Positions 20,327 through 49,347 of a DNA stretch of 64,000 nt are shown one piece after another. The translations under genes were made by a program, and so were the position numbers. The notes below the pieces were generated by a model. That model did not search any database, was not told where the DNA came from, and was given only the letters and a program-made list of their open reading frames with translations. The stretch's first letter is position 1; the number at the start of each line of letters is the position of its first letter. The DNA lies in assembly GCA_044892505.1 (NCBI GenBank), contig CM097883.1, positions 266,104,001 through 266,168,000 of the forward strand, written 5' to 3'. This stretch comes from Schmidtea nova (Eukaryota).

Positions 20327-20591
20327 AACTTCTTTCTCACGCACATATGTACTAAACTGTACTATTGTACTAGAAAGTTGTAAATCGCAAACATCCAGCC
20401 AACAATTACGGTAGATGTTGTATTATATTCACCATGGCAGGTTCCAATTGTCCTTTCCTCGGTTATAGTCAGTAACCTAAGAAAATACTATGATAAATCA
20501 TAGTTTACTACAACTCCGGATATCTCATGACACCACTTTGTAAGTTATAGTTATTTAAGTTAGACAATTGGAGATCCTAGCAAATTAGACT

Positions 20592-20840: not shown

Positions 20841-21274
20841 TTTTTTTCTTACCATCGCGTCTGTGTGCGCATTATGATTTTCATGGTTATCGCGTCTGTG
20901 TGCGCGTTTTGTTGGGACTTTTATTTGAGGTTTGGAATAAATTGATTGAGAAATAAAATCGTGGAGTTTAAAAATCTGGTTGTTTTATCGTGTGATTTGT
21001 TGGATAAAATTGAATTTCTGGGAGTTTTGAAATCTTTGCTGAGTAATTCTTTGTGATTGATTCGAATTTTCTGAAATGACATCAAGCTTGATCTTATTAC
21101 ATTTTAATCATGTTGGCAACGTTCTCATACAAGTAGACTCTAATTCGATAGTTGACATTCAAACTGAAGACGATGCTTTGGAAACGAAAGAGTGTATCTC
21201 TATAGATTGTGAAAATAATATTATATCCTCAAGAGATATCAATCCTACTTTTCAATTTAAGAAAGTTAATTGTG
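20841..21274 (+). repeat. Copy of BEL LTR flank attached to array unit 2 (also 29625-30058, 36505-36925 and partial 38590-38717)
   Basis: Matches ~12219-12650 and is preceded by a T-tract. Confidence 0.93.
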
Positions 21275-26250: not shown

Positions 26251-29040
26251 TTTTCATTTTTCAGTTTTTAAGGGAGTGTTTTACAGTAATACACACTCCC
26301 TTGGTAATGTCTCACCGTCCTAAAATTAACCTACGTAGATACCTTACCTAGTTCTTTAGTGGTGGTGGTCGTATACAATCTTATTCTTAAGCATTATTAT
26401 TTTCCTAGCATGAAAGCCCACATACAACCAGTAGTTTGTTGTATGTGGGCTTTCATGTTAGCATGCTCCCTGATACCGGAGCATTACTTTAAAAGACAAT
26501 ATAACTACAATATAACTACATATTTAAAAGTCTGTGCAAAATGCCCACATAGTACCCCTTGGGGCACTATGTGGGCAATTATACATTACAACTTTTGTAC
26601 ACAAATGAAAATACATTATACACAATATGACATCAGTACTATTAACTACATATTTAAAAGTCTGTGCAAAATGCCCACATAGTACCCCTTGGGGCACTAT
26701 GTGGGCAATTATACATTACAACTTTTATACACAAAATCAGAATTTACAAATACAGATTGGTGGGGAGGACATACTGGGCCAGTCCTCTCCTTATATAATA
26801 CCATAGTTAATACTTAAATACCTGAGTACTAATTTATTTCAAGTACCTAAAATACCTGGAAGCCTTAAAATACCTGAAATACCTAAAATACCTACAATAC
26901 CTAAAATACCTACAATACCTATAATACCTACAATACCTAAAATACCTACAATACCTAAAATACCTACAATACCTACAATACCTAAAATACCTACAATACC
27001 TAAAATAACTAAAATACCTAAAGATACCTAAAATAACTAAAATACCTAAAATACCTGAAAATAGAATGACAATATGGTTAATAATTAATATATTTAATAA
27101 TTTAAGGGTCAAGGAAAATTTTGGCGTGGCGGTGCTTGGGTTAAGGGGGAGATCTCGATCTAGTTAATACTTATGAACTAGTCAATTCTCGTACCAACAT
27201 GTTTTCGGTTGAGTAGTGGCCTACTACTCCACCGAAAACTGTCAGTCTGATCTCCCTTATCCGCCCTTACCCTAGCGGCTGGTTTGAACTTATGTAGCAG
27301 TACTACACAGACCCATTCACGTTTATAGTGAGAAGGGTATCACTCTGATCTGCCGGACGTACCCTACCCTCGCCTGATCATAACGTTGATAGGTCCGTTA
27401 TGATTTTTCCTGTGGTAAGATCTGCTCTATAGAGACTATATACTATAGAGGGTCTATCCCGCCTTGTTATTGGCAAGATAAAACTATGTAAAAATGCAAA
27501 CACTAACTATGCGTAAGCAATATATTACCTTTTTTAAGGACAGGTATAAAGTTGACCACTACCCCAAGAACGCGACTGCTTTAGACGCTTTGTTCAAGGC
27601 GAACACATGGTACTCGATAGCCCTTAATGAGAGTAATGCGGCACCGAATTGTCGAAGCACCGAAGCACTCCAATTCTTCTACCGCAGACCTAAGATCAAT
27701 TGGCAATCAGTGGTATTTTTCACCCACCAACTGACAAACACTTAGAATTTTACTATATAGCTAGGCTATATAGAACAAAATCATTTTTATAGTGGGAATT
27801 GCCACCACTTATGTAACCAACATCGAGCCAACATCGAGTTTACTAAGCAACTAGGCCACTTAGAACAATTCCTTTGGCAATGAGAATTGCAAAACACCTG
27901 TACACAGGACCGACAATCACGTGTCGACGACAAGACCTGATTAACCCGGGCCCTTTATCAGTAATCAGCAGTATGTTTCACCCACCAACTACCAAACGTC
28001 CCGTATTTTTACTATATAGCTAGGCTATATAGAACAAAATCATTTTTATAGTGGGAATTGCCACCACTTATGTAACCAGCATCGAGCCAACATCGAGTTT
28101 ACTAAGCAACTAGGCCACTTAGAACAATTCCTTTGGCAATGAGAATTGCAAAACACCTGTACACAGGACCGACAATCACGTGTCGACGACAAGACCTGAT
28201 TAACCCGGGCCCTTATCAGTAATCAGCAGTATGTTTCACCCACCAACTACCAAACGTCCCGTATTTTTACTATATAGCTAGGCTATATAGAACAAAATCA
28301 TTTTTATAGTGGGAATTGCCACCACTTATGTAACCAACATCGAGCCAACATCGAGTTTACTAAGCAACTAGGCCACTTAGAACAATTCCTTTGGCAATGA
28401 GAATTGCAAAACACCTGTACACAGGACCGACAATCACGTGTCGACGACAAGACCTGATTAACCCGGGCCCTTATCAGTAATCAGCAGTATGTTTCACCCA
28501 CCAACTACTAAACGTCCCGTATTTTTACTATAAAGCTAGGCTATATAGAACAAAGTCAATTTATAGTGAGATTTGCTACCACTGATATGACCAACATCGA
28601 ACCAACCGCGATTATTACCATCACTATATTTTATCCAACATCGACCAGATCGTTCAATCAGTTCCTCTAGTTTCAAAGGCGTCCCCGCACTACACTCGCA
28701 GAATAAGTACTAATGTATATATTCGCTGGTAGATTTAAGATCCATTATAAGAATTAACACTGTTTTTAAAAAAAGAGTGAGAGTAATTCTTAGTATAATC
28801 TCAGTACAGTCTTCCTAGTTCGGTTACTCCGGGCGTCCCACAGAGATTCTCACTAGAAGATCGGATCTTAAACTTCATGTTGCCATAAAGGTATATTTTC
28901 ATATACTATCACCTTAAAGAGGCACTTCTGGACATATATATATATTACCAAAAGTGAACCTCTCAAAACGCTACTATAGAACGTAACGATAATTAAAATC
29001 ACCTCCCGAAGGAAGGATAATGAGATCAAATGACTATTAC

Positions 29041-29110
29041 CGAGTTTACGTTTTTGGTTCCATATTTCCATATGGTTAACAGGAAGACCCCGTGAAGGCC
29101 CGTAAACTCG
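29041..29110 (-). ncRNA. HDV-like ribozyme core, R2 copy 2
   Basis: P2 CGAGTTTACG/CGTAAACTCG, L3 TTCACG, P4 CCATAT-GGAA-ATATGG. Confidence 0.7.
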
Positions 29111-29375
29111 AGCTTCTTTCTCACGCACATATGTACTAAACTGTACTATTGTACTAGAAAGTTGTAAATCGCAAACACCCAGCCAACAATTACGGCAGAT
29201 GTTATATTATATTCACCATGGCAGGTTCCAATTGTCCTTTCCTCGGTTATAGTCAGTAACCTAAGAAAATACTATGATAAATCATAGTTTACTACAACTC
29301 CGGGTATCTCACGACACCACTTTGTTAGTTATAGTTATTTAAGTTAGACAATCGGAGATCCTAGCAAACTAGACT

Positions 29376-29624
29376 TAGTCCGTGCCAGTTCTAAGTTGAC
29401 CGTTTAGTGTACAACGACGATCGTCAATCCGAAGACCAACAACCAAAGCAAAATTCGCCCATCAACCAGTTAAAAAAGTACCATCTCAACACCATTTCAA
29501 GTTGCCTCAAAACAGCATCAAAACAGCTCAATTCTATACCAACTGACTTCTTAACTAAGCCCATCATACCCGGTCCTTAGAGCCAATCCTTTTACCGAAG
29601 GTACGGATCTAATTTGCCGACTTC
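29376..29624 (-). rRNA. 28S: 28S rRNA gene fragment at the 5' end of R2 copy 2
   Basis: Same sequence and ends as 20592-20840. Confidence 0.9.
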
Positions 29625-30502
29625 TTTTTTTCTTACCATCGCGTCTGTGTGCGCATTATGATTTTCATGGTTATCGCGTCTGTGTGCGCGTTTTGTTGGG
29701 ACTTTTATTTGAGGTTTGGAATAAATTGATTGAGAAATAAAATCGTGGAGTTTAAAAATCTGGTTGTTTTATCGTGTGATTTGTTGGATAAAATTGAATT
29801 TCTGGGAGTTTTGAAATCTTTGCTGAGTAATTCTTTGTGATTGATTCGAATTTTCTGAAATGACATCAAGCTTGATCTTATTACATTTTAATCATGTTGG
29901 CAACGTTCTCATACAAGTAGACTCTAATTCGATAGTTGACATTCAAACTGAAGACGATGCTTTGGAAACGAAAGAGTGTATCTCTATAGATTGTGAAAAT
30001 AATATTATATCCTCAAGAGATATCAATCCTACTTTTCAATTTAAGAAAGTTAATTGTGAGTAGGTAGTTAGTGGCTCCCCAACCCAGTGGCTCCCCAACC
30101 CACCCCCCCCCCTAGAAAAAAAGTGGGTTGGGGAGCCACTATGTTTTTTCGTCGATCTTTTGTATAGGAAAATTTTCGTCGATCTTTTGTATAGGAAAAT
30201 TTTCGTCGATCTTTTGTATAGGAAAATTTTGTCGGTCTTTTGTACAGGTGGGTTGGGGAGCCACTATGTTTTTGGGTCGATCTTTTGTATAGGAAATTTT
30301 TATCAATCTTTTGAATAGGATTTTCTACTCGGAGATTTTTTTCTCGGGCAAAAAGGGACTCTGAAATTTTGTACAGTGATTTTTGATCTGGTATTTTTGA
30401 ATAGGATTTTTGTTATGGTTATTTTGAATAGAGAATTTTATGTCGGTCTTTTGTATAGAAAAATTTTTTTCAATCTTTTCTATAGGATTTTTTTTTGTCA
30501 GT

Positions 30503-33500
30503 CGAGGCATATGGCTAGAGAAACTCATAGATAAAGTATAAAACGAGCTATTAACCTGGAGTTTTATTTTCCTTTTTAAGCACAGGCTCTTTGTAAGGTC
30601 AGTTTGTTTTGGAACCAACCTACGCAGATGCTTCACTCGTTTTTCCCACCAAGGATTAGCAGGAGTAATAAACTCTTTATCGGAGTCTTTCCCCAAAAGC
30701 CAACATACGTTTTACCGCTTTATTAGCAATTGGTTTGCCTGCACACTTTACTCAGAGTGTACATAGGTAGCAATCCCTAGAGATTACTCAGTGCCTCATC
30801 ACCTTTGGACCATCTATCACCTTTACTTACACTTGGTAAACTTCCTCTCTTTGTACTCGTGTTAGTTTATTAGTGTCGAAGTGATAGATTAATGCCAGTC
30901 GAATCATAGTGGCAAGCCACAAAATCAACGACCAACATTCAACTTACATGATAGATCAACGGATTCTTTAGAGGACAAAAGATACTTGTGGTATCCGGCT
31001 CCCCCTGCGCTGCCCCCACCACAGGTACGTTATTAAGGCAATCGTATTACCGGCCGCGTTGACGCATGTAAACCCACTTAGCAAGCCAAGTGGTGCAGTT
31101 TATCTTTTTATAACTGGTGGTCCTACTCCCACACTGTCTTTACAACTTAACACCAACCAGCTCCGAATATCTTGCTTTCGCTGTCATTTAAACGGTGAGA
31201 CTGGCACTAAGCTGCGCTGCCAATGGTTATGATAAGTAGTCATAACTCGTGTAGTCCTATTCAGCAATCTGAATAGCGTAGTTTGTCTTTTTGTAGCTGG
31301 TGGTTCTACTCCCACACTGCCGGACAAGCATCGTACTCATCCTCATACAAACACTAATACTCTATTAAACTCGAGGCTTTGATAATGTCTTGCCTGACTC
31401 TTCAAGAGATTTATATACATGTTTGCGTCCAGTTTTCCCGGTTCATTATTATTATTAAGATAAAATAAAATAAAATAAAGTTAAAAGGATACGATTGTTC
31501 TTGTAGAGAAGATCGAATAGGCCTAAAGAAAACTCAAAGTAATTGAACTTACCACAGGGTCTCCTCGAATGCACGACTTGGACCTAACTAGCGGGATTTA
31601 TACTAAGGGAGTTCCACCCATTCTTGCACCCTCAGCCGATCGTGCACCCACCCTTTAAGCGAAAGGAAGACCCTCTACGGACTGTCGGGAGAGTTCTTCG
31701 CAGCTTCTTCTGTTATCCCTACAATGGGTCTCGGAAGCGGCCCCAAATCCACGAGTGAAACCTACGAAGCAATCTTTCCTTCTAAATATTTTGTAAATAA
31801 GTAATTTAATTAAATCTGCCCCCTATTTTATAGTCAAGCAAACATACAGACAAACAACCAGACAACCAGAGACTAAATGAAAATAAGTAAACAATAAATA
31901 AAATAAGAAACGAAATGTGAGTTTAGTATATAGAATATATGGTTATTTTAATAATAAAGATAATGTTATAAACCAATACTGTTATTATATAAACATACAA
32001 ACTATAAGTGCCAATTCTTCCAAGCGCAATACATTCTCGCCGTCCAATTTAGTACTTTCAGAGATATGAGCATGGCGTCTGACTGCGTGACACCGAATTT
32101 CTGTACGGTGTCCCATGAATCCTCGGCCCAGATACCCCGCCAGTTCAGCGTTAACGCACCGAACTCTACTGTATCTGCCCCCTGTCCAAGGACCCAGTCA
32201 CGTATCTCAATCTCATCATATACTTTGGACTTTGTAGTATTCCGTTCTCTCAGATCTGACTTTTCACTAACAATTTGTACATCCACGACCATAGCACGGC
32301 GGTCCTTGATAATTACTAAATCCGGTTTCCGTATAGTCTCTTTATACGGTATAACCGGTTCCACAAGGGTCTTCCTCCCCTTCTTCCTCGCGATGTCAGC
32401 TGTAAAAAGCATCACTTTATTGTGTCGTTCCACTCGCATTCCATGCGTAGCAGTGCACTTTTGTGATATGTGGCTAAGACTGCAGGGTAACCCACAACCC
32501 GCCTTACATATAGATGATGAAGTGGCGGAGCCGCCATTCATACGACTGAGTCGCGTCGGGGTACTAAAAAGGTTTCCACGAACTTTGACACTGTTGACGA
32601 AGGATCTACCTGTCATCAACTTAGTCCGGGCCTTAAGCCAGTTATGAACAAAAGGCACCTTGTCGCTTTCACACAGACCCTTCCCATCTAGCTTTTTATA
32701 CAACAAGTCTCGCATCGACTCGTAATAGGTATGTTTTTCGTACGCCAGGGAGTCACCAGTTTTAATAGGCTTACTCCATTTGGCTAACAAGTTTCTGACG
32801 ACATCCTGCTCCACTAATCCGCGAATCCTTCCATCACTGCTATCGGCAAGCCTCCTCAATCTAGTTATCTTCGCAAACTTCACCTCAGCCAAGAGAGTAG
32901 GTACCCCCATTCCTCCATCTTTAACTTTGGAGTGAATGTACGAAAAGCACGTATCTTTGGGTAGATGTAGCCATTTGCGAACAAGCTTCCGGGTTATCTT
33001 GTCCAGTTCACAAAGCTCCAAGTCATCGGTTTCGCCTAAAATTGCTTCGTGCAAAATGCCCGGTATAAGGAAGTTAGTTAAGACTTCCAGTTTTTGTTGT
33101 GGTTTAATAGGGGAGATAGTAATATTATTAATGCGTTCTGTAAATATTTTAGTTAAGTTATTTTTCATTTTACCCAGCGGACCAAAATAAATGCCTAGAT
33201 ATTTATAAAAATCATTTGATAACAAAATGGGAAATTCCTCTTCACCATCGGCCACTCGCTCCGGCGTTATTATCCAACTGTCATTCTTCCCGTCTCTTTT
33301 GGCTACAATGGATGCACACTTTGCAGCATTCACTGAAAGACCATTTTCACCAAGTTCTCGAAGAACAGAAGAAAGAATGTCTTGGAGTCCTTCTTTGGTC
33401 TCAGCTAGAAGGATAATATCATCAGCGTAGGCCATAATGGGATAGGTATTTCCATTCATCTTGTATCCGAGTTGGGTTTTGTAGGCTTTCTCAATCGCCA

Positions 33501-36500
33501 ACTCAATAATGTTATTAAAAAGTGCGGGTGAAAGCGGGTCCCTTTGCTTTACACCTCTTTTGAACGTAGCTGGCGTTCCATCTACAATAGTCTCGGCGTC
33601 AGTGTAGCTATTTTCTATATAGTTTAAAAGTAGTTTGGGGTAATGGGCTATTTTTGCCGCTCTCAAAATACTGTCATGATTGACAGAATCAAAAGCTTTC
33701 TTCATGTCAATGAAGGCGAGGGCAATATTCTTTTTATTTTTACGTGCATCTGAGAGGATGGAGTCTAGTAAAATGGTATTCTCTAGACATCCATCAATGG
33801 GCTTGAACCCTTTTTGGGCTGAAAAACTTTTATCATAGTTTAGGGTTCGCTGAGCGAGAATTTTATTTAAAACTCTAGTTATAACTGAATTTATTGAAAT
33901 AGGCCGATAATCACTTGGACTTTTTGGATTATCGGTCTTTGGTATTAGCGTTGTTCTGGAGCTTTTTAGAACCGGAGGAAGATAACCTAGAAAAATAACC
34001 AAATTAAATAACTTTACCAATACAGACGTTGGGATCGTCCTTAGTGTTGCTGTAGTAATGCCATCAGGACCACAGGCAGTCTTCAGGTCTATTTCCTTAA
34101 CTGAATTCAGAACCTCTGAATCGGTTATAGGTAAAACCATATTACTCTCCTCAGTTACAGTCTCTACCGCTCTTGTATCAGCATCTGATTCCCTTTCGAA
34201 AACCCCACGCCAATACTCACCCAGACCCGTGACTGGTTCGATACCACTCACCAAAGAATCGACCTTCCCCCCGAGTATCACTTTGGCTGCCTCACTTCTG
34301 TCTTTTTTGAATAATTCTTGGAGAGCTCCATATGTTTTTCTTCGGAACTCTTTCTTCAGATGCTTCTTCGCATCCTTGGGCGGCTTGACTAGTGGGCTAA
34401 CCTTACTACGGGGTGGCTTTCCTTTGGGACGATGGCTAAAGGTTATATCATTACAATATATCTCTAGACATCTTCTTTTTTCATCAGACGCAGAAGGACC
34501 GTGGATAATATAGTCAAGGTCGCGCTCTTGCCAATCATCGATACCTTCCTTCTTTGGTAGTGCGGAGAGGTATTTAATGATTGCTTCTTTGTCCGATTCA
34601 TCGTGGGCGAACTGAACCTGCTGCTTGTTTTGCGGTATGTAAATATTGTCGTCAGGGTTTTCCCTTAACACTTGTAATATTTTACAATACCTAACCGTTT
34701 TCAAGTGTGCTCTAATGGACTCCTTGGAGCGATCAGCACTAACGGTCCCTAATTTGTACATTAAAACTCCTCTATTACATTCGAGTCTCTCACATGCCAC
34801 ATGCACCTTAGCCATGCGGACTTCCTCCTCAACAGTCCAAATTGCGTTACGCGAGTTGATTTTATTTTTATTTATTTTATTTATCTTAGCGGCATCGTGT
34901 TCATCACGATGTTTGTTACTGGTGTGTACCCCCTTCCCAATTTTAGTCGAAAAAACTGCTTCACAAAAATCACAAGCGAAAGTGTCGGCGGCTTCCTCTC
35001 CCTTCGTTTTTAATTTATCATTTGTTTTCATTTTTCATTTTTCAGTTTTTAAGGGAGTGTTTTACAGTAAGACACACTCCCTTGGTAATGTCTCACCGTC
35101 CTAAAATTAACCTACGTAGATACCTTACCTAGTTCTTTAGTGGTGGTGGTCGTATACAATCTTATTCTTAAGCATTATTATTTTCCTAGCATGAAAGCCC
35201 ACATACAACCAGTAGTTTGTTGTATGTGGGCTTTCATGTTAGCATGCTCCCTGATACCGGAGCATTACTTTAAAAGACAATATAACTACAATATAACTAC
35301 ATATTTAAAAGTCTGTGCAAAATGCCCACATAGTACCCCTTGGGGCACTATGTGGGCAATTATACATTACAACTTTTGTACACAAATGAAAATACATTAT
35401 ACACAATATGACATCAGTACTATTAACTACATATTTAAAAGTCTGTGCAAAATGCCCACATAGTACCCCTTGGGGCACTATGTGGGCAATTATACATTAC
35501 AACTTTTATACACAAAATCAGAATTTACAAATACAGATTGGTGGGGAGGACATACTGGGCCAGTCCTCTCCTTATATAATACCATAGTTAATACTTAAAT
35601 ACCTGAGTACTAATTTATTTCAAGTACCTAAAATACCTGGAAGCCTTAAAATACCTGAAATACCTAAAATACCTACAATACCTAAAATACCTACAATACC
35701 TACAATACCTACAATACCTAAAATACCTACAATACCTAAAATACCTACAATACCTACAATACCTAAAATACCTACAATACCTAAAATAACTAAAATACCT
35801 AAAGATACCTAAAATAACTAAAATACCTAAAATACCTGAAAATAGAATGACAATATGGTTAATAATTAATATATTTAATAATTTAAGGGTCAAGGAAAAT
35901 TTTGGCGTGGCGGTGCTTGGGTTAAGGGGGAGATCTCGATCTAGTTAATACTTATGAACTAGTCAATTCTCGTACCAACATGTTTTCGGTTGAGTAGTGG
36001 CCTACTACTCCACCGAAAACTGTCAGTCTGATCTCCCTTATCCGCCCTTACCCTAGCGGCTGGTTTGAACTTATGTAGCAGTACTACACAGACCCATTCA
36101 CGTTTATAGTGAGAAGGGTATCACTCTGATCTGCCGGACGTACCCTACCCTCGCCTGATCATAACGTTGATAGGTCCGTTATGATTTTTCCTGTGGTAGG
36201 ATCTGCTCTATAGAGACTATATACTATAGAGGGTCTATCCCGCCTTGTTATTGGCAAGATAAAACTATGTAAAAATGCAAACACTAACTATGCGTAAGCA
36301 ATATATTACCTTTTTTAAGGACAGGTATAAAGTTGACCACTACCCCAAGAACGCGACTGCTTTAGACGCTTTGTTCAAGGCGAACACATGGTACTCGATA
36401 GCCCTTAATGAGAGTAATGCGGCACCGAATTGTCGAAGCACCGAAGCACTCCAATTCTTCTACCGCAGACCTAAGATCAATTGGCAATCAGTGGTATTTT

Positions 36501-36504
36501 TCAC
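30503..36504 (-). mobile_element. R2-clade element, copy 3 (5'-truncated in UTR, ORF complete)
   Basis: Near-identical to copy 2; stops at 36504 against a T16 tract. Confidence 0.92.
32002..35031 (-). CDS. R2-type protein, 1009 aa
   Basis: Same domains as copy 2; W-to-R in KKGWK and stop shifted by one codon. Confidence 0.95.
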   Translation of the reverse strand: MKTNDKLKTKGEEAADTFACDFCEAVFSTKIGKGVHTSNKHRDEHDAAKINKINKNKINSRNAIWTVEEEVRMAKVHVACERLECNRGVLMYKLGTVSADRSKESIRAHLKTVRYCKILQVLRENPDDNIYIPQNKQQVQFAHDESDKEAIIKYLSALPKKEGIDDWQERDLDYIIHGPSASDEKRRCLEIYCNDITFSHRPKGKPPRSKVSPLVKPPKDAKKHLKKEFRRKTYGALQELFKKDRSEAAKVILGGKVDSLVSGIEPVTGLGEYWRGVFERESDADTRAVETVTEESNMVLPITDSEVLNSVKEIDLKTACGPDGITTATLRTIPTSVLVKLFNLVIFLGYLPPVLKSSRTTLIPKTDNPKSPSDYRPISINSVITRVLNKILAQRTLNYDKSFSAQKGFKPIDGCLENTILLDSILSDARKNKKNIALAFIDMKKAFDSVNHDSILRAAKIAHYPKLLLNYIENSYTDAETIVDGTPATFKRGVKQRDPLSPALFNNIIELAIEKAYKTQLGYKMNGNTYPIMAYADDIILLAETKEGLQDILSSVLRELGENGLSVNAAKCASIVAKRDGKNDSWIITPERVADGEEEFPILLSNDFYKYLGIYFGPLGKMKNNLTKIFTERINNITISPIKPQQKLEVLTNFLIPGILHEAILGETDDLELCELDKITRKLVRKWLHLPKDTCFSYIHSKVKDGGMGVPTLLAEVKFAKITRLRRLADSSDGRIRGLVEQDVVRNLLAKWSKPIKTGDSLAYEKHTYYESMRDLLYKKLDGKGLCESDKVPFVHNWLKARTKLMTGRSFVNSVKVRGNLFSTPTRLSRMNGGSATSSSICKAGCGLPCSLSHISQKCTATHGMRVERHNKVMLFTADIARKKGRKTLVEPVIPYKETIRKPDLVIIKDRRAMVVDVQIVSEKSDLRERNTTKSKVYDEIEIRDWVLGQGADTVEFGALTLNWRGIWAEDSWDTVQKFGVTQSDAMLISLKVLNWTARMYCAWKNWHL

Positions 36505-37858
36505 TTTTTTTTTTTTTTTTATTTTTCATTTTCATGGTTATCGCGTCTGTGTGCGCGTTTTGTTGGGACTTTTATTTGAGGTTTGGAATAAATTGATTGA
36601 GAAATAAAATCGTGGAGTTTAAAAATCTGGTTGTTTTATCGTGTGATTTGTTGGATAAAATTGAATTTCTGGGAGTTTTGAAATCTTTGCTGAGTAATTC
36701 TTTGTGATTGATTCGAATTTTCTGAAATGACATCAAGCTTGATCTTATTACATTTTAATCATGTTGGCAACGTTCTCATACAAGTAGACTCTAATTCGAT
36801 AGTTGACATTCAAACTGAAGACGATGCTTTGGAAACGAAAGAGTGTATCTCTATAGATTGTGAAAATAATATTATATCCTCAAGAGATATCAATCCTACT
36901 TTTCAATTTAAGAAAGTTAATTGTGAGTAGGTAGTTAGTGGCTCCCCAACCCAGTGGCTCCCCAACCCACCCCCCCCTAGAAAAAAAGTGGGTTGGGGAG
37001 CCACTATGTTTTTTCGTCGATCTTTTGTATAGGAAAATTTTCGTCGATCTTTTGTATAGGAAAATTTTGTCGGTCTTTTGTACAGGTGGGTTGGGGAGCC
37101 ACTATGTTTTTGGGTCGATCTTTTGTATAGGAAATTTTTATCAATCTTTTGAATAGGATTTTCTACTCGGAGATTTTTTTCTCGGGCAAAAAGGGACTCT
37201 GAAATTTTGTACAGTGATTTTTGATCTGGTATTTTTGAATAGGATTTTTGTTATGGTTATTTTGAATAGAGAATTTTATGTCGGTCTTTTGTATAGAAAA
37301 ATTTTTTTCAATCTTTTCTATAGGATTTTTTTTTGTCAGTCGAGGCATATGGCTAGAGCTAGAGAAACTCATGTGATAAAGTAAAACGGGCTATTAACCT
37401 GGAGTTTTATTTTCCTGATTAAAGCACAGGCTCCGTTTCAGATCGTCCTTATAGGTACGAAGTTGAATTGGATGCTTCACCCGCTTTTCCCACCCAGGAT
37501 TGGCAGGGATCCTCCCTTATCAGAGTTTAACCCAAATGTACACCCGGTTTTTCTCCGTACTATGTACACTCAGTTCAGCCTTGCACACTTTTACTCATAG
37601 TGATACACATAAAAGGGCAGCCCCGAAGGACCACCAGGTGTCTCACATCCGAAAAGTTGGAAGAAGCCAACCCACCCCCTGCGGTACCATCTAGGAGCCT
37701 AGGAATGGTTACGACCTCTCCCCGTGCATGGATACTATCAACAAGACTGTCGATATCCATCTCGGTGAGCACGTTGACCCACCTGAAATGCATTAATTCA
37801 AATTGTCCAATCTTGTAATGTTTCCATTTAGACCTTTCAACCTAAACTAATACACCAC

Positions 37859-37926
37859 CGCATACGTCTTCTGTCCCATTTACATTATGGTTACCAGGAA
37901 GCACCCCGTGGAGGCCCGTAATTGCG
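37859..37926 (-). ncRNA. HDV-like ribozyme core of the SIDE-like element
   Basis: Sense CGCAATTACG-G-GCC-TCCACGG-GGT-GCTTCCT-GG-TAA-CCAT..ATGG-GACAGAAGA-CGTATGCG. Confidence 0.7.
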
Positions 37927-38340
37927 ATTTCTCTTCGTGCACTAACAGTACTATACCGTACTTAAATGTGCCAAGAGCGGTATCACTGCAAATACCCGGC
38001 CAACATGACGTCGGCAGATGTCGGATACATTAGTAGACACATTTTGGCAAAAATCTGATTGCTGTTCTCAAGCTAATTCCCGTAGCCAAAGAACATACTA
38101 TAATATCCGGAGTCCCATGAGAAGATAGCCTCCGAGGAGACGCATAAGACATTAAAAGGGATATTATAGCTCTAACCACTCAGGCTCACAAGGTCCTTTG
38201 CAGTTTTACTATACAATCAAATTAACTAATCCGAACCACTTCTAGATTGACGCCTAGGGTCCTTACAGATCCGTTAAACCTGTAGATTCACATCGCCGCG
38301 TCTCTAGAGCCAATAATTTTATTTGAGGTCCAGATCGAAT

Positions 38341-38589
38341 TAGTCCGTGCCAGTTCTAAGTTGACCGTTTAGTGTACAACGACGATCATCAATCCGAAGA
38401 CCAACAACCAAAGCAAAATTCGCCCATCAACCAGTTAAAAAAGTACCATCTCAACACCATTTCAAGTTGCCTCAAAACAGCATCAAAACAGCTCAATTCT
38501 ATACCAACTGACTTCTTAACTAAGCCCATCATACCCGGTCCTTAGAGCCAATCCTTTTACCGAAGGTACGGATCTAATTTGCCGACTTC
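38341..38589 (-). rRNA. 28S: 28S rRNA gene fragment at the 5' end of the SIDE-like element
   Basis: Same fragment and same inner junction GGCACGGACTA. Confidence 0.9.
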
Positions 38590-38717
38590 TTTTTTTCTTA
38601 CCATCGCGTCTGTGTGCGCATTATGATTTTCATGGTTATCGCGTCTGTGTGCGCGTTTTGTTGGGACTTTTATTTGAGGTTTGGAATAAATTGATTGAGA
38701 AATAAAATCGTGGAGTT

Positions 38718-40400
38718 TATGTCGATCATTTGTATAGGAAATTTTTTTTCATTCATTTGTATAGGATTTTCTATTCCGAGATTTTTCTCGGCCAAAAAGG
38801 GACTCTGGTATTTTTGTACATGGAATTTTGGTATTTTTGTATAGGATTTTGGTCTGGTTATTTTGAACAGGGATTTTTGGTCTGGTATTTTTGTATAGGA
38901 TTTTTAGTCAAGTATTTTGTATAGGATTTTGGTCTGGATTTTTTGAATATAATTTTCTACTCGCAGATTTTTTTTAGGGTAAAAAAAGGGAATCTGGCAA
39001 TTTTGAACTAAAAATTAAATGGTAAATAAAAAACACGTGTAAATTTTTTAAACTAGTAAAATACATTGAAATTATTTTGAATAGGATTTTCAATTCCCAG
39101 ATTTTTCTTCAGGCAAATATAGACTCTGGTAATTTTGAACTAAATTTTTTATGGTAAATAAAAACACGTGTAAAATTTTTAAACTAGTAAAATAGATTGA
39201 AATTATTTTGAATTGTATTTTCTACTCCCAGATTTTTTCTAGGGCAAAAAGGGACTCTGGTAATTTTGAATAGAAATTTTAAATAAAGATTTAAGAAAAG
39301 GGTATTAAACACGTGATTTAATTAAATATGCAATAAAACATGGAGAAATTTACAAAAACAAAAGAATGACATAATTTTTAAAACTTAATGAAAAAGGGTA
39401 AAATTAAGGCAAAGTCAGAGTTAAAATGACATAATATTTAAAATTAAATAAAAAGGGTTAAATTAAGGCAAAGTCAGAGTTGAATGATGCAATATTTAAA
39501 ATTTAATGAAAAAAGGGTAAATTTTTTTGGGCAATCTCGGAGTTGGTAAATTAAAAGTAAAATTTTTTAAAGTAAATTTTTTCAAAGAAAAATTTTTTAG
39601 AATAAAATTTTTTATACAATTTTTATAAAATCTTAAACTAAATTCAATAAACTTTTTTATACTGAAATTTTTAAGAGATTTTATGATAAATAAAAACACA
39701 TCTTAATTTAGAAAAATGATAAATAGATTTAAATGGTTAAATTAAATAGGCAATAAAACTTGGAGAATTTTTACAAAGACAAAAAAAAATGACATAATAT
39801 TTAAAATTTTATAAAAAAGGGTAAAATTAAAGCAAAGTCAGAGTTGAATGATGCAATATTTAAAATTTAATAAAAAGGGTAAAATTAAGGCAAAGTCAGA
39901 ATTGAAATGACATAATATGAAAAATTTTAAAAAATAAGTACGAAATTTTTTGGGAAATCTCGGAGTTGGTAATTTAAAAGTAAAATTTTTAAAGTAAAAT
40001 TTTTAAAGTAAATTTTTCAAAGTAAAATGTTTGAGAATAAAATTTTTTATACAATTTTTATAAAATCTTAAACTAAATTCAATAAACTTTTTTATACTTA
40101 AATTTTTATGATAAATAAAAAACACGTATAAATTTAGAAAAATGATAAATAGATTTAAATGGTTAAATTAAATATGCAATAAAACATAGAGAATTTTACA
40201 AAGACAAAAGAATGACATAATATTTAAAATTTTATAAAAAGGGTAAAATAAGGGCAAAGTCAGAGTTCAAATGACATAATATTTAAAATTTAATAAAAAA
40301 AAGGGTAAAATTAAGGCAAACTGAGAGTTGAAATGACATAATATGAAAAATTTTATAAAATAAGTACGAAACTTTTTGGCAAACTCCGAGTTGGTAAATT
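38718..40400. repeat. Diverged TIR-like repeats grading into AT-rich ~57-bp and ~430-bp duplications
   Basis: TTTGTATAGGATTTT and CAAAAAGGGACTCTGG motifs shared with the TIR; repeated AAAAGGGTAAAATTAAGGCAAAGTCAGAGTTGAAATGACATAAT. Confidence 0.8.
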
Positions 40401-41699: not shown

Positions 41700-43990
41700 A
41701 TAATCTCATTACATACACACACAAATCAACAACCGAATAGTTAATGATCAGATACCAACTGACTCTATCCACAAATAAAAAACCAACTAGTTACTTACCA
41801 GTTACCAACTGACTCTATATTAACCAACTAGGAAAATTGTTCCATATGTCAATCAATTATCTCTTCTTATTAACTAGATATCAATTAATCCAATCCCCTT
41901 AGTTAACAAACAGACCAATTCCTTACTTACTTACTACTTCTACACGTTAACCAACTAGTTCTATACACCAACCAATTGGTTCTATTCATTAATCATATAC
42001 CAACCAACCAACTACCCACTCTATACATACTAACCAGCAACTAATCTCTTACATACCAACTAGTTCTCTACATTAACCAACTAACTCTTCTCACAAACCA
42101 ACTAACTCTTCTCATTAACCAACTACTTCTATTCACAAATCCCCAACCAACTACACTAATCAACTAACTAACTATACATACTAACCAACAACTAATATCT
42201 TACTTACCAACTAACTCTTCTCATTAACCAACTAACTCTATTCACAAATCCCCAACCAACTACACTAATCAACTAATTAACTAACTAACTAACTATGCAT
42301 TCTAACCAACAACTAATCTCTTACTTACCAACTAACTCTTCTCATCAACCAACTAGTTCTATACATCAACCAACTAACTCTTCTCATTAACCAACAAACT
42401 CTTCTCATTAACCAACTAACTCTTCTCATTAACCAACTAACTCTTCTCATCAACCAACTAACTCTTCTCATTAACCAACTAACTCTATTCACAAATCCCC
42501 AACCAACTACACTAATCAACTAACTAACTAACTATGCATACTAACCAACAACTAATCTCTTACTTACCAACTAGTTCTTTATATCAACCAACTAATTCTT
42601 CTCATCAACCAACTAACTCTATTCACAAATCACCAACCAACTACACTAATCAACTAACTAACTATACACACTAACCAACAACTAATTCCTTGCTTGCTAA
42701 CTACATCAATACATCAACCAACTAACTCTTCACATCAACAAATTAACTGTTCTCATCAATCAACTAACTCTTCTCATTTACCAAGCAACTCTATTCACAA
42801 ATCCCCAACCAACTACACTAATCAACTAACTAACTATACATACTAACCAACAACTAATATCTTACTTACCAACTAACTCTTCTCATTAACCAACTAACTC
42901 TATTCACAAATCCCCAACCAACTACACTAATCAACTAACTAACTAACTAACTAACTATGCATTCTAACCAACAACTAATCTCTTACTTACCAACTAACTC
43001 TTCTCATCAACCAACTAGTTCTATACATCAACCAACTAACTCTTCTCATTAACCAACAAACTCTTCTCATTAACCAACTAACTCTTCTCATTAACCAACT
43101 AACTCTTCTCATCAACCAACTAACTCTTCTCATTAACCAACTAACTCTATTCACAAATCCCCAACCAACTACACTAATCAACTAACTAACTAACTATGCA
43201 TACTAACCAACAACTAATCTCTTACTTACCAACTAGTTCTTTATATCAACCAACTAATTCTTCTCATCAACCAACTAACTCTATTCACAAATCACCAACC
43301 AACTACACTAATCAACTAACTAACTATACACACTAACCAACAACTAATTCCTTGCTTGCTAACTACATCAATACATCAACCAACTAACTCTTCACATCAA
43401 CAAATTAACTGTTCTCATCAATCAACTAACTCTTCTCATTTACCAAGCAACTCTATTCACAAATCATCAACCAACTACACTAATCAACTAACTAACTACA
43501 CACTAACCAACAACTAATTCCTTGCTTACCAACTACATCAATACATCAACAAACTAACTCTTCACATTAACCAACAAATATTATTCATTAATCTTATACC
43601 AACCATACCAATTATATTAACCAACTAACTAACTAAACACTCTAACTATCAACCAATACCTTACTTTCCAACTACTTCTTCTCATTAACCAACTAAATCT
43701 ATTCACAAATCACCAATACTTACCTACCAAGTAGTTTTACACATTAACCAACTACTTCTACATGTTTACCAACTAGTTCTTTACATTAACCAACTAGTTC
43801 TATACATTAACCAACTAACTCTATTCATAAATCAACAACAGACTAGTTACTTATTAAATATCAATTAATTCTATTTACAATCAACTAGTTAAATCAACTA
43901 ATTGAATACCAACTGACTCTCTATATTAAACAAATAATTCTTCACTCTAAGGAAATTGTTCCACGTATCAATTAACTCTTCGCATTAACT
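41700..43990. repeat. Strand-asymmetric AACCAACT/AACT satellite with ~110-bp monomers and a 662-bp higher-order duplication
   Basis: G nearly absent on the + strand; identical track ORFs at 42325 and 42987 give a period of 662. Confidence 0.92.
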
Positions 43991-45715: not shown

Positions 45716-46194
45716 AATCTTCGAACAAAAAGATGTTGAAACAAGAAGTAATGAAAATTATTCTTGAAGAAAATTCTATTTCGGCATCAAATTTGGTTAT
45801 GAATCCTGCAGTTCAATTTCTACAATACTCGATGGAATATTTAAAATTTCCAATCATTTATTCATTTAAAGTATATATTTATTTAATTAAAATAAATTTC
45901 TAATATTTTTTTTTATAGGAACCTGTTACATTGAAACAATGCATGTATAATCTTCAAGTGGGGAAAATTGGAGATATTGATAGACGAAATATTTCAGAAA
46001 TTTTGTTAGCAATCAACAAAGAAATACAATTTAATGAAGCTTTTACGTATATGAATTGCAATAAAGATTGTAATTTGAAAAATTTCGATGAAAATTCGAT
46101 ATATCAAATTAAGATAATGATTCAAGGCTTCAAAGAATCTAATGTTGTTGTCAAGCCTGTTTGGAAAATTATAGAAACAAATATATGCGAATAA
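45716..46194 (+). CDS. Hypothetical two-exon ORF remnant (intron ~45871-45918)
   Basis: GTATAT...TTTTTTATAG intron joins two open frames; no recognisable domain. Confidence 0.3.
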
Positions 46195-46862
46195 AATTTA
46201 TTTATCAAATCTTATCTTTTCATTTTAATTTTTTTTTGTTTTGGTTAATTTAAATTTTTAATAACAATTATTTAATGTGTTAAATTTATTACCATTTAAA
46301 ATCGATTAATTTTTTATTAAAAAAAAATAATTAATTTTATTATCATAATTATTCTAAATTGATTTTGTTTTAATAATTGATTATACGTTTAAAATTAAAA
46401 TTCAAATTAATTTTCTTTAATATTTCCCGGCAACAATAATTAATTCGGAATTTGATATATATTCGAATATAAATCAAATTCCGAATTAATTATTGTTGCC
46501 AAGAAATATTAAAGAAAATTAATTTGAATTTTAATTTTAAACGTATAATCAATTATTAAAACAAAATCAATTTAGAATAATTATGATAATAAAATTAATT
46601 ATTTTTTTTTAATAAAAAATTAATCGATTTTAAATGGTAATAAATTTAACACATTAAATAATTGTTATTAAAAATTTAAATTAACCAAAACAAAAAAAAA
46701 TTAAAATGAAAAGATAAGATTTGATAAATAAATTTTATTCGCATATATTTGTTTCTATAATTTTCCAAACAGGCTTGACAACAACATTAGATTCTTTGAA
46801 GCCTTGAATCATTATCTTAATTTGATATATCGAATTTTCATCGAAATTTTTCAAATTACAAT
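46067..46862. repeat. ~800-bp spacerless palindrome centred at 46464/46465
   Basis: Arms are reverse complements with a few mismatches; centre TATATTC|GAATATA. Confidence 0.95.
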
Positions 46863-46863
46863 T

Positions 46864-47108
46864 TCGGCAAATTAGATCCGTACCTTCGGTAAAAGGATTG
46901 GCTCTAAGGACCGGGTATGATGGGCTTAGTTAAGAAGTCAGTTGGTATAGAATTGAGCTGTTTTGATGCTGTTTTGAGGCAACTTGAAATGGTGTTGAGA
47001 TGGTACTTTTTTAACTGGTTGATGGGCGAATTTTGCTTTGGTTGTTAGTCTTCGGATTGATGATCGTCGTTGTACACTAAACGGTCAACTTAGAACTGGC
47101 ACGGACTA
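46864..47108 (+). rRNA. 28S: 28S rRNA gene fragment at the 5' end of the right-arm R2
   Basis: TCGGCAAATTAGATCCGTACCTTCGG...GGATTGGCTCTAAGG...CAACTTAGAACTGGCACGGACTA. Confidence 0.9.
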
Positions 47109-47373
47109 AGTCTAGTTTGCTAGGATCTCCGATTGTCTAACTTAAATAACTATAACTAACAAAGTGGTGTCGTGAGATACCCGGAGTTGTAGTAAACTAT
47201 GATTTATCATAGTATTTTCTTAGGTTACTGACTATAACCGAGGAAAGGACAATTGGAACCTGCCATGGTGAATATAATATAACATCTGCCGTAATTGTTG
47301 GCTGGGTGTTTCCGATTTACAACTTTCTAGTACAATAGTACAATTTAGTACATATGTGCGTGAGAAAGAAGTT

Positions 47374-47443
47374 CGAGTTTACGGGCCTTCACGGGGTCTT
47401 CCTGTTAACCATATGGAAATATGGAACCAAAAACGTAAACTCG
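47374..47443 (+). ncRNA. HDV-like ribozyme core, right-arm R2
   Basis: P2 CGAGTTTACG/CGTAAACTCG, P3 GCC/GGT, L3 TTCACGG, P1-3' TCTTCCT, P4 CCATAT/ATATGG, J4/2 AACCAAAAA. Confidence 0.7.
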
Positions 47444-47901
47444 GTAATAGTCATTTGATCTCATTATCCTTCCTTCGGGAGGTGATTTTAATTATCGTTA
47501 CGTTCTATAGTAGCGTTTTGAGAGGTTCACTTTTGGTAATATATATATGTCCAGAAGTGCCTCTTTAAGGTGATAGTATATGAAAATATACCTTTATGGC
47601 AACATGAAGTTTAAGATCCGATCTTCTAGTGAGAATCTCTGTGGGACGCCCGGAGTAACCGAACTAGGAAGACTGTACTGAGATTATACTAAGAATTACT
47701 CTCACTCTTTTGTTAAAAACAGTGTTAATTCTTATAATGGATCTTAAATCTACCAGCGAATATATACATTAGTACTTATTCTGCGAGTGTAGTGCGGGGA
47801 CGCCTTTGAAACTAGAGGAACTGATTGAACGATCTGGTCGATGTTGGATAAAATATAGTGATGGTAATAATCGTGTTTGGTTCGAGGTTGGTTATATCAG
47901 T

Positions 47902-49347
47902 GGTAGCAAATCTCACTATAAATTGACTTTGTTCTATATAGCCTAGCTATATAGTAAAAATACGGGACGTTTAGTAGTTGGTGGGTGAAACATACTGCTG
48001 ATTACTGATAAGGGCCCGGGTAAGCAGGTCTTGTCGTCGACACGAGATTGTCGGTCCTGTGTACAGGTGTTTTGCAATTCTCACTGCCAAAGGAATTGTT
48101 CTAAGTGGCCTAGTTGCTTAGTAAACTCGATGTTGGCTCGATGTTGGTTATATAAGTGGTGGCAATTCTCACTATAAAACTGATATTGTTCTATATAGCT
48201 TAGCTATATAGTCAAATTCTAAGTGTTTGCCAGTTGGTGGGTGAAAAATACCACTGATTGCCAATTGATCTTAGGTCTGCGGTAGAAGAATTGGAGTGCT
48301 TCGGTGCTTCGACAATTCGGTGCCGCATTACTCTCATTAAGGGCTATCGAGTACCATGTGTTCGCCTTGAACAACTACGTCTAACGCAGGCGGGTTCTTG
48401 GGGTAGTGGTCAACTTTATACCTGTCCTTAAAAAAGGTAATATATAGCTTACGCATAGTTAGTGTTTGCATTCTTACATAGTTTTATCTTGCCAATAACA
48501 AGGCGGGATAGACCCTCTATAGTATATAGTCTCTATAGAGCAGATCCTACCACAGGAAAAATCATAATGGACCCATCAACGTTATGATCAGGCGAGGGTA
48601 GGGTACGTCCGGCAGATCAGAGTGGTGGCAATTCCCACTATAAAAATGATTTTGTTCTATATAGCCTAGCTATATAGTAAAAATACGGGACGTTTAGTAG
48701 TTGGTGGGTGAAACATACTGCTGATTACTGATAAGGGCCCGGGTAAGCAGGTCTTGTCGTCGACACGAGATTGTCGGTCCTGTGTACAGGTGTTTTGCAA
48801 TTCTCACTGCCAAAGGAATTGTTCTAAGTGGCCTAGTTGCTTAGTAAACTCGATGTTGGCTCGATGTTGGTTATATAAGTGGTGGCAATTCTCACTATAA
48901 AACTGATATTGTTCTATATAGCTTAGCTATATAGTCAAATTCTAAGTGTTTGCCAGTTGGTGGGTGAAAAATACCACTGATTGCCAATTGATCTTAGGTC
49001 TGCGGTAGAAGAATTGGAGTGCTTCGGTGCTTCGACAATTCGGTGCCGCATTACTCTCATTAAGGGCTATCGAGTACCATGTGTTCGCCTTGAACAACTA
49101 CGTCTAACGCAGGCGGGTTCTTGGGGTAGTGGTCAACTTTATACCTGTCCTTAAAAAAGGTAATATATAGCTTACGCATAGTTAGTGTTTGCATTCTTAC
49201 ATAGTTTTATCTTGCCAATAACAAGGCGGGATAGACCCTCTATAGTATATAGTCTCTATAGAGCAGATCCTACCACAGGAAAAATCATAACGGACCCATC
49301 AACGTTATGATCAGGCGAGGGTAGGGTACGTCCGGCAGATCAGAGTG
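47902..49347. repeat. ~723-bp tandem duplication in the right-arm R2 5' region
   Basis: GGCAGATCAGAGTG ends at 48624 and at 49347, with matching interiors. Confidence 0.9.

Follow-up and report, generated by a model that had tools for sequence, protein, structure and literature searches.

In the literature found, R2 SIDEs (short internally deleted elements) proper come from a single fly species among 39 surveyed. The element of Drosophila willistoni, R2Dwi_SIDE, has a 5' end 64% and a 3' end 81% identical to those of the resident R2, separated by a central 197 bp without identity (Eickbush and Eickbush 2012; PMC3414825). The R2/R1 hybrid SIDEs of D. willistoni, D. falleni, D. innubila and D. 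immigrans are also non-autonomous and combine an R2 ribozyme head with a 3' end taken from a site-specific non-LTR element (PMC3414825). TbRIME and NARTc, which accompany L1Tc/ingi, are internally deleted, carry an HDV-like ribozyme at their head and depend on an autonomous partner (PMC3414825, PMC4035085). Finally, non-functional copies of the degenerate R2 of Bacillus rossius, R2Br-deg, are retained and gain in number when the surrounding repeat recombines unequally, not by retrotransposition (PMC4370867).

Architecture of the interval

The interval described here occupies positions 38589-37339 on the minus strand of a 64-kb window, by which the whole stretch of flatworm DNA that was analysed is meant. 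With a probability of about 0.55, it represents an ORF-less, non-autonomous element that derives from the R2 family and is built like a SIDE. Its parts, in 5' to 3' order, are:

38337 to 38589, minus strand: 28S rRNA fragment (Rfam LSU model ~1906-2126, including an expansion segment)
38086 to 38336, minus strand: decayed 28S-like leader, X, which diverges with the insert and not with the flank
37858 to 38081, minus strand: predicted HDV-like ribozyme
37648 to 37857, minus strand: central 210 nt, without detectable similarity to R2, the remainder of the window, Rfam families or tRNAs
37356 to 37647, minus strand: homologue of the last ~290 nt of the R2 3' UTR (blastn and nhmmer)
37339 to 37355, minus strand: 17-nt 28S remnant, TAGCCATATGCCTCGAC, from just downstream of the R2 insertion site

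The same window contains full-length R2 copies, two of which are used for comparison:

21736 to 29243, minus strand: R2 of unit U2, the candidate autonomous partner, recognised by its match to the R2Bm structure and by Pfam
47241 to 54979, plus strand: R2 of unit U5 in the inverted arm, a distinct variant with an ORF of 1006 aa (50461-53481)

The sequence-only reading had described a body of ~1 kb without an ORF. The lack of an ORF stands, as the longest sense ORF is 72 aa, but the element proper is only about 726 nt long (38081-37356), and the other ~500 nt of the interval (38589-38086) are 28S-derived and lie outside it. Comparison of the R2 protein with the element (tblastn) gave chance matches only (E > 4), so that it is without R2 coding sequence. 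Protein remnants were searched for in the central 210 nt, and a tRNA or SINE-like head was looked for as well; none were found. The R2 SIDE architecture, in which an unrelated centre lies between a ribozyme head and an R2 3' end and an ORF is lacking, is thus supported. The element is probably an R2 SIDE, and it may have been mobile.

The likeness to R2Dwi_SIDE extends to most of these parts: a 5' HDV-like ribozyme of the R2 type, predicted here, the end of an R2 3' UTR, an unrelated centre of ~200 nt, no ORF, and a full R2 in the same genome. Both elements have diverged from their resident R2 to a similar degree (64%/81% identity in the fly, 68%/65-75% here), and the differences are in loops or are compensatory (PMC3414825). 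The fly element, however, is 529 bp long and ends in poly(A), whereas the present one has ~726 nt and no poly(A). The fly element resides in functional 28S genes with about as many copies as R2, whereas the one copy here sits in a decayed 28S fragment outside rDNA of a flatworm. R2Dwi_SIDE is documented by ~70 reads that are <3% different, by variable 5' junctions and by cleavage in vitro (PMC3414825). The hybrid SIDEs differ more strongly, as they have an R1 3' end, occupy the R1 site and are flanked by 14-bp target duplications, in contrast to the R2-type 3' end and the R2-site remnant downstream of it found here (PMC3414825). TbRIME and NARTc belong to another clade, are not specific for a 28S site and are present in many dispersed copies (PMC3414825, PMC4035085).

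When the interval is compared with one full R2 unit by blastn and nhmmer, exactly three common blocks are found:

38640-38337, matching 29675-29372: spacer and 28S fragment, 99.3% identical
38105-37863, matching 29279-29047: 5' junction tag and ribozyme, 68% over 249 nt
37647/37607-37300, matching 22018/21981-21680: 3' UTR end, remnant and spacer, 75%

The stretches 38336-38106 and 37862-37648 have no similarity to the full R2 unit by either program. The identity to the full R2 is 68% in the 5' block and 65-75% in the 3' block, and the flanks are 99-100% identical. As the element is diverged by 25-35% in the common blocks and the R2 copies differ by only 0-7% among themselves, it is not a recent deletion of a resident R2, in agreement with what had been proposed.

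Another explanation appears less likely. A third, diverged R2 lineage might have been inserted at this pseudo-28S site, lost its interior locally and never propagated, so that a one-off dead copy survives through duplication of the surrounding block. There is a single copy of the element in the window, and the unit U3 shows that kilobase deletions happen in this array. Genomes with several R2 lineages, and amplification of dead R2 by unequal recombination instead of retrotransposition, are documented (PMC4370867). The unalignable centre could be the fast-evolving UTR of such a third lineage. A third ORF-bearing R2 lineage has nevertheless left no trace in the window. Moreover, random deletions of >6 kb that leave precisely the ribozyme and the final ~290 nt in place make up a small fraction of those possible, and retention of these two parts is the outcome that selection for mobilisation in trans produces. 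The ribozyme core is conserved at 31/34 positions against 34-64% in the less conserved stretches, which argues for constraint through most of the element's separate history.

A degenerate pattern of the ribozyme core and an invariant 3' motif had 0 matches in metagenome, genome and viral contigs. Exact look-ups of the R2 ORF, of two further R2 ORFs and of six small ORFs of the SIDE-like element were blank, as was that of a flanking proteasome exon. A word search with the R2 protein retrieved a best relative that is only 38% identical; the genome of the window is thus unrepresented in the collection. Real 28S had 0 matches in viral contigs and was supplied instead by an R2-bearing contig, L001.

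The two R2-type ends

As the sequence-only reading had held, the SIDE-like element has the same ends as R2, namely a predicted ribozyme head and ~290 nt from the end of an R2-type 3' UTR. Both lie on the minus strand. The ribozyme was laid out helix by helix against that of the full R2. The helices were listed explicitly because MAFFT leaves P1 and the bulged P2 out of register. In the SIDE-like element they are, all on the minus strand:

P1: 38081-38075, with P1' at 37902-37896
J1/2: ~147 nt, with a conserved block
P2: 37927-37923 and 37920-37917, paired with 37866-37858
P3: 37915-13/37905-03, with L3 at 37912-06
J1/4: 37895-91, followed by P4 at 37890-87/37879-76
J4/2: 37875-67, with the conserved C37873

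A layout with P2, P3, L3, P1', J1/4, P4 and J4/2 is possible in both the SIDE-like element and the full R2. P2 consists of 4+5 bp with a bulge, P3 of 3 bp, P4 of 4 bp and P1.1 of 2 bp. Independent MFE folds of the two sequences give the same nesting of P2, a P3-like hairpin and P4. The catalytic core is 31/34 identical to that of the full R2, and the upstream P1/J1/2 stretch 38-71%. Different bases have been used to rebuild the outer part of P2, which has 6 bp and a bulge of 2 nt (chance P = 0.019). Both sides of P1.1 have changed, as it is U.U + C-G in the full R2 and C-G + C-G in the SIDE-like element. P4 is still a hairpin, although its loop and stem have changed. A C occupies position 3 of J4/2 in both ribozymes (C37873 in the SIDE-like element, C29057 in the full R2); in the SIDE-like element it is 6 nt away from P2', compared with 3 nt in HDV.

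The proposed covariation of the HDV core is present in so far as the P2 and P1.1 changes keep their pairs, but these pairs come from just two lineages, and the compensatory changes might all belong to the R2 branch. P1 is weak in both the SIDE-like element and the full R2, with 5 bp followed by a mismatch; the literature permits a P1 of 4-7 bp whose uppermost part contains mismatches (PMC3774820). The fold of the SIDE-like core alone is no stabler than shuffled sequences (z = -0.27). The HDV-type families of Rfam have no match at E <= 10 in 36400-39000 or 28800-29700, which weighs little as it is expected for R2 ribozymes with a J1/2 of ~130-150 nt. The same core, CC / UCCACG / GGU / P1' / GGUAAC, is found in an outside R2 that resides in a genuine 28S gene (L001). 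There, P1' pairs with 28S position -28, in line with the literature (PMC3774820). A clean 28S/R2 5' junction is present in only one of the outside loci fetched.

The homology of the 3' block to the R2 3' UTR (nhmmer E 5e-38) extends over ~340 nt and ends at the junction. Two islands, 37508-37470 and the last ~73 nt, are each 85% conserved. The arm at 37469-37435 has its sequence replaced (34%) and its hairpin fold retained. When folded separately, the terminal domains of the SIDE-like element and of the full R2 take up the same three-way layout, and in the 9-bp closing helix the pairing is retained through one compensatory and one G-U change. This terminal domain is the only one common to both 3' UTR folds. 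Covariation across the whole 3' UTR was not borne out, as transfer of the complete MFE structure kept 21/49 pairs against 19.4 expected, an insignificant result without excess.

The 17-nt remnant TAGCCATATGCCTCGAC follows the 3' end. It occurs 5 times in the window (0.05 expected), each time after an R2 3' end or the SIDE-like element. It is identical at 15/17 positions to real 28S, which reads TAGCCAAATGCCTCGTC at the R2 3' junctions of the outside contigs L005 and L006. In CM coordinates these two contigs had pointed to a different 28S insertion site near model position 1891. This candidate was rejected, as their sequences show canonical R2 3' junctions and the coordinate of ~1891 is thus a local-alignment artefact. 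The remnant is shared with the full elements, as the earlier reading had it, whereas the identity of the junctions is incomplete. The SIDE-like element has an extra 6 nt at its 3' junction (a duplication of CTCTAG), which are absent from 4/4 full R2 copies, the leader has decayed, and there is no ribosomal gene.

The pattern of conservation also bears on the origin of the interval by DNA-level exchange. An old, decayed paralogue of an R2 unit might have had its outer parts overwritten by gene conversion, the conserved patches being conversion tracts. The flanks are 99-100% identical and the interior is not, and the near-identical ends and diverged middle of U2 and U5 suggest that conversion proceeds inwards from the flanks. 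Such a mosaic is distinctly improbable all the same. The patch of the ribozyme core is internal, with diverged sequence on either side; the last 73 nt differ at 11/72 aligned positions and the adjoining 348 nt at none; the helices are retained through base changes; and the differences between R2 interiors reflect purifying selection and not neutral decay.

An assembly artefact, in which repeat-rich reads were wrongly joined into a chimera, is highly improbable. The region is very repetitive, with tandem units, an inverted copy and satellites, and the 100% identity of U2 and U3 is an error-prone setting for assemblers. Nevertheless, no run of N lies <30 kb from the interval, both flanks run cleanly into known unit sequence, and the diverged blocks are colinear with the R2 ends and carry structure-preserving changes, unlike a chimera of unrelated sequence.

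A duplicated pseudo-28S locus

In Drosophila, the rDNA-specific type I or R1 insertions also form tandem arrays outside the nucleolus organiser, with short 28S fragments between them. The array described here, by comparison, is made of R2 copies with intact ORFs, has the SIDE-like unit at its inner end and is accompanied by an inverted copy 8 kb away. The DNA around the SIDE-like element consists of non-rDNA repeats without a ribosomal gene, and the locus is a tandem and inverted duplication of pseudo-28S units, not rDNA. On the 3' side of the interval lies the segment that had been taken for the terminal inverted repeat of a transposon:

36927 to 37338, plus strand: 3'-junction flank with short sub-repeats and 18-nt inverted motifs

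Its inverted motif has 20 occurrences, and 55324-54977, next to the inverted R2 copy, matches 37011-37358 with 100% identity. The arms, at 12.7-38.6 kb and 46.9-55.4 kb, belong to a large segmental duplication in inverted orientation. They represent 8.6-26 kb of duplicated R2 units, and the left one is in turn organised as a tandem array. The 8-kb centre between them is satellite DNA with no ORF >= 90 aa and no transposase, and a target-site duplication around the arms was not identified. The reading as a transposon TIR is thus not supported. Runs of N are found in the window at 2337-2604, 5269-5497 and 60098-60237.

The 28S fragment is recognised by the Rfam LSU model at 38306-38593 (cmscan E 3.3e-21). 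At gathering thresholds Rfam has no matches in the whole window, and at E <= 10 the SIDE-like element and the 5' end of a full R2 have only the LSU fragment and chance miRNA-like matches. The fragment is 99.3-99.5% identical to 29372-29624 and 20588-20840 and forms part of the homogeneous flank common to the full R2 units; between U1 and U2 it shows 0 differences. At 38337|38336 the identity falls from 99% to unalignable, and the same 5' boundary separates U1 from U2, at 29372|29369. On the 3' side it changes equally sharply at the R2 3' junction, from 100% over the 348-nt flank to diverged sequence. No partner for P1, which would have accounted for the 5' boundary, was found where the leader begins. 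Leader X ends in a 20-nt tag (38105-38086) resembling 28S just upstream of the R2 site. The leaders of the full R2 and of the SIDE-like element are weakly similar (4/300 shuffles reach the score), and that of the full R2 retains a 28S motif beside ACGGAC.

Three R2 ORFs in the window are intact (1008, 1009 and 1006 aa); they neighbour the SIDE-like element and might provide it with protein. The R2 of U2 has a predicted ribozyme at 29243-29041, a 5' UTR of ~2.8 kb with tandem repeats, an ORF of 1008 aa (26250-23224) and a 3' UTR of 1.5 kb. Its protein matches R2Bm (PDB 8gh6) with E 1e-121 and contains Pfam RVT_1. U2 and U3 are 100% identical, with a kilobase deletion in U3. U5 and U2 have near-identical ends and a more diverged middle, with pS 0.135, pN 0.020 and dN/dS 0.14. 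Since R2 copies with dN/dS of 0.13-0.14 lie in flanks that differ by 0-2%, the inserts are not mere duplicates of one another. Their divergence under purifying selection within identical flanks indicates that the units hold distinct inserts, as rDNA units do. The units behave as miniature rDNA units, with homogeneous flanks and different inserts, namely two R2 variants and the SIDE-like element.

Because the SIDE-like element has inherited its flanks in common with the duplicated units, its presence at this position is no proof of an insertion event; it may have arrived by an insertion of its own. For the duplication of the unit block, the best model by analogy would be the turnover of R2Br-deg. 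The latter is full length, has a dead ribozyme and resides in rDNA, whereas the SIDE-like element is internally deleted and has a well-formed core (PMC4370867).

Possible mobilisation and its significance

If the element is an R2 SIDE, its mobilisation can be envisaged as follows. The SIDE-like element would be transcribed within a longer transcript, and its 5' HDV-like ribozyme would trim the RNA, or may once have done so. The ~290 nt at the 3' end would fold like the end of the R2 3' UTR and be bound in trans by the R2 protein of the neighbouring elements. The R2 protein would then nick the R2 site and reverse-transcribe the SIDE-like RNA into it by target-primed reverse transcription. The present copy sits where the R2 site would be in a decayed 28S fragment, within a non-rDNA block of tandem and inverted duplications.

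In a more far-reaching version, R2 and the ORF-less element no longer live in the ribosomal genes of this animal and cycle via private pseudo-28S landing sites in the amplified repeat. Each lineage would carry its own decayed 28S leader of ~110-250 nt as part of the mobile unit, the weak P1 would leave the co-transcript uncut so that the cDNA carries the leader, and annealing within the conserved 28S fragment, at ~155 nt upstream of the R2 site, would join the 5' end. Such a cycle would explain why flank and insert meet at the same 28S position both between the SIDE-like element and R2 and between U1 and U2, and is nonetheless improbable.

If borne out, the SIDE would be the second case for R2 and the first outside fruit flies in the literature found. 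An independent case in so distant a phylum would mean that parasites made of no more than its two RNA ends arise from R2 repeatedly. The shared blocks provide candidate minimal cis elements for the R2 protein: the ribozyme core (37927-37858), a block of ~45 nt in J1/2 at about 38020-37985, and the two 3' UTR islands, which lie within its final 150 nt. Minimal cis elements bear on current efforts at R2-based site-specific gene insertion. The locus is also an example of R2 variants, intact and under selection, that reside outside rDNA in pseudo-28S units.

R2 units outside the rDNA

Most prominent in the window are minus-strand units of ~8.7 kb, each carrying an R2 element in a pseudo-28S flank. 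Three tandem units and one inverted unit (12219-36527 and 46860-55440) lie outside rDNA: an Rfam search found no rRNA gene in the window, and therefore the locus is not rDNA. R2 is already known from flatworms (PMC13188248).

R2 units, and the parts of a full unit on its own strand
12219-20840, minus: U1, R2 unit with a broken ORF (758 aa)
20841-29624, minus: U2, full R2 unit
29625-36527, minus: U3, 5' end deleted at about 36504
46860-55440, inverted relative to U1-U3: U5, R2 unit
Part 1: 28S rRNA fragment (Rfam LSU model ~1906-2126)
Part 2: leader, about 110 nt, barely recognisable as 28S-like, with a terminal tag resembling the sequence that immediately precedes the R2 site
Part 3: R2 element, 7.5 kb
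Part 4: 17-nt 28S remnant, TAGCCATATGCCTCGAC
Part 5: spacer, ~880 bp

The full R2 elements are unusually large (~7.5 kb), with a 5' UTR of ~2.8 kb containing 258-bp and 9-bp tandem repeats and a 3' UTR of 1.5 kb without poly(A). Three ORFs are intact (1008, 1009 and 1006 aa) and that of U1 is broken. The 1008-aa ORF matches Bombyx R2 structures (E 1e-121) and has one zinc finger, a Myb motif, the RT, and C-terminal CCHC and nuclease motifs. Each of the window's five 28S remnants adjoins an insert. Compared with U2, U3 has lost ~1.9 kb at 36504-36528, where about 23 bp of filler mark the join; the loss takes in the R2 5' end, the ribozyme, the leader, the 28S fragment and 36 bp of the spacer.

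Anatomy and identity of the SIDE-like element

The sequence-only reading described a ~1-kb, ORF-less and clearly diverged partner of R2 in 37341-38589. The observation is real, although the element proper spans only about 726 nt (38081-37356, minus strand) and about 500 nt of that interval is 28S-derived. Comparison of the interval with the full unit U2 gave three blocks, beyond which no similarity to the full unit was found.

Blocks shared with U2 (minus strand)
38640-38337 vs U2 29675-29372: flank and 28S fragment, 99.3% identity
38105-37863 vs U2 29279-29047: junction tag and ribozyme, 68% identity
37647-37300 vs U2 22018-21680: 3' UTR end and flank, 75% identity across the blastn alignment, 65% within the element proper

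The divergence from full R2 is thus confirmed in the ribozyme and 3' blocks. So is the missing ORF: the longest sense ORF has 72 aa, and the centre (37857-37648) contains no R2 protein remnant and no match in the window, Rfam or tRNAs.

Known R2 SIDEs (short internally deleted elements) come from Drosophila, and among them only the one in D. willistoni is purely R2 (PMC3414825). The latter is 529 bp long, with ends 64% and 81% identical to R2 and an unrelated centre of 197 bp, and its differences from R2 are compensatory or located in loops (PMC3414825). The present element likewise joins diverged R2 ends (68% and 65-75%) to an unrelated 210-nt centre. Judged by sequence, its architecture would be that of a SIDE in every feature open to testing. 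A full-text literature search for the term found no R2 SIDE outside Drosophila. For D. willistoni a family of copies is established, with copy number, junction variation and cleavage all demonstrated (PMC3414825), whereas the present element is a single copy in the window. The main rival explanation is that a third R2 lineage lost its interior in a single isolated event and that block duplication preserved the result; dead R2 copies in stick insects have been kept by duplication in the same way (PMC4370867). A putative SIDE is nevertheless the best explanation, with a probability slightly above one half. The SIDE would be of greater interest if copies occur in the rDNA of the animal, or if a leader-carrying life cycle outside rDNA proves true.

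Ribozyme and 3' end

The HDV order P2, P3, L3, P1', J1/4, P4 hairpin, J4/2, P2' is readable in both full R2 and the element, which share a GCC/GGU P3, a 7-nt L3, the J1/4 sequence G-N-UAA and a 9-nt J4/2 with a conserved C. The following observations support an HDV-like fold. When folded independently by MFE, the two cores nest in the same way. In P2 the inner 4 bp match exactly, but the outer helix is rebuilt from different bases (GAGUU/AACUC in R2; 6 bp around CGCA/UGCG, shifted by a 2-nt bulge, in the element); an equally long helix arises at that place in 1.9% of shuffles. P1.1 has changed on both sides, from U.U plus C-G in R2 to C-G plus C-G. The core is identical at 31 of 34 nt, compared with 38-71% in the upstream P1/J1/2 stretch. 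The same core layout occurs in an unrelated R2 on an outside contig, L001 (32-33% protein identity), which lies in a real 28S gene and whose P1' pairs with 28S position -28, a pairing described for most R2 ribozymes (PMC3774820).

The HDV-like fold also has weak points: the best P1, which in both elements has 5 bp and then a mismatch (4 nt after the junction tag in the element, 18 nt in R2), a J4/2 spacing longer than in HDV, the ordinary stability of the element's core alone (z = -0.27), and the lack of a match of either ribozyme to the Rfam HDV models. A J1/2 block, ACATCTGCCG ... TGTTGGC-GGGT-TTTGC, is conserved at about 70-80% between 38020-37985 and 29197-29165 (both minus). Because J1/2 otherwise normally varies freely, this block may be a candidate second functional site, e.g. 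a protein-binding site.

Similarity to the R2 3' end is patchy: it reaches 85% both in 37508-37470 and over the final ~73 nt but falls to 34% in 37469-37435. Separate folds of the last ~140 nt yield one common layout, comprising a 9-bp closing helix whose pairing survives one compensatory and one G-U change, an arm with a conserved base and a tip hairpin of unrelated sequence, and a small GGA...UCC hairpin. Covariation modelling, proposed in the sequence-only reading as a check, gave a divided answer: RNAalifold found 14 pairs changed on both sides, but in the fairer test, in which the structure predicted on one sequence is scored on the other, kept pairs showed no excess. As neither terminal fold stands out in stability either, the evidence for a conserved 3' structure is suggestive only. 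At the junction the element has ...CTCTAG-CTCTAG-CC, and all four R2 copies have ...CTCTAG-CC.

Flanks, inserts and surroundings

Over 348 nt the flank adjoining the element's 3' junction matches that of U5 exactly, and the element's 28S fragment shares 99% identity with the fragments of U1 and U2. Yet this identity is lost abruptly, precisely at the R2 3' end and at 38337|38336. Between the R2 ORFs of U2 and U5, 13.5% of synonymous but only 2% of non-synonymous sites differ (dN/dS 0.14; 0.13 for U1 and U2), while the flanks of the units differ by only 0-2%. It follows from this contrast that the inserts stem from different active R2 variants and are not duplicates of a single copy. The 252-nt 28S fragment is the same in U1 and U2; differences start at 29369, and this boundary (29372|29369) lies within 3 nt of that of the element. 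Together with the ORF-flank contrast, it shows that the boundary pattern is general in the locus and not limited to the element. With homogeneous flanks and different inserts, the units thus behave like rDNA units.

The decayed leader diverges along with the insert, and the variable compartment starts within 28S-like DNA, some 155 nt before the R2 site. One idea is that uncut co-transcripts are joined through annealing in the 28S fragment; another is that conversion tracts stop where homology stops. In an unrelated metagenome contig (L004, 1540-1640), 28S crosses the R2 site and then decays (TAGCCAGATTTCTCGTCAGC...) ahead of an R2 ORF, which may be a further case of R2 with degenerate 28S.

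The proposed location in a transposon TIR was rejected: the arms are duplicated units, the left one a tandem array, and satellite DNA, in which no ORF reaches 90 aa, fills the 8-kb centre. A satellite at 42055-43870 is built on a 21-bp unit, with higher-order periods of 109-369 bp and extreme strand asymmetry (GC skew -0.89). The right arm's inner end adjoins a perfect 398-bp palindrome (46067-46862; arms 99% complementary, no spacer) directly beside the inverted unit's 28S fragment; it represents a foldback element or else a breakpoint of assembly or duplication. A fifth flank copy (38721-38930) is diverged and lacks the 28S remnant.

Each unit holds four copies of an 18-nt motif, GTGGGTTGGGGAGCCACT, two of them inverted and two direct. 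They lie where the units cease to be homologous to the copy at 5498-6030 and to U5. The motif could be the terminus of a mobile element, but none of that kind was identified.

Sites of GTGGGTTGGGGAGCCACT
12662-12856
21286-21483
30070-30265
36937-37103
55232-55429

The window is eukaryotic DNA, and also contains a BEL/Pao fragment, a Penelope-like RT/GIY-YIG ORF and a proteasome alpha-6 exon. The Penelope-like ORF (3562-4752) lies within nested inverted repeats (2645-5268; arms of 297, 225 and 423 nt, 98-100%) bounded by N runs, which look like a head-to-head pair of Penelope-like copies. The proteasome exon (55493-56113, minus), whose best relatives are all Platyhelminthes proteins (50-58% identity) and thus point to a probable flatworm host, lies 50 bp past the end of the inverted arm.
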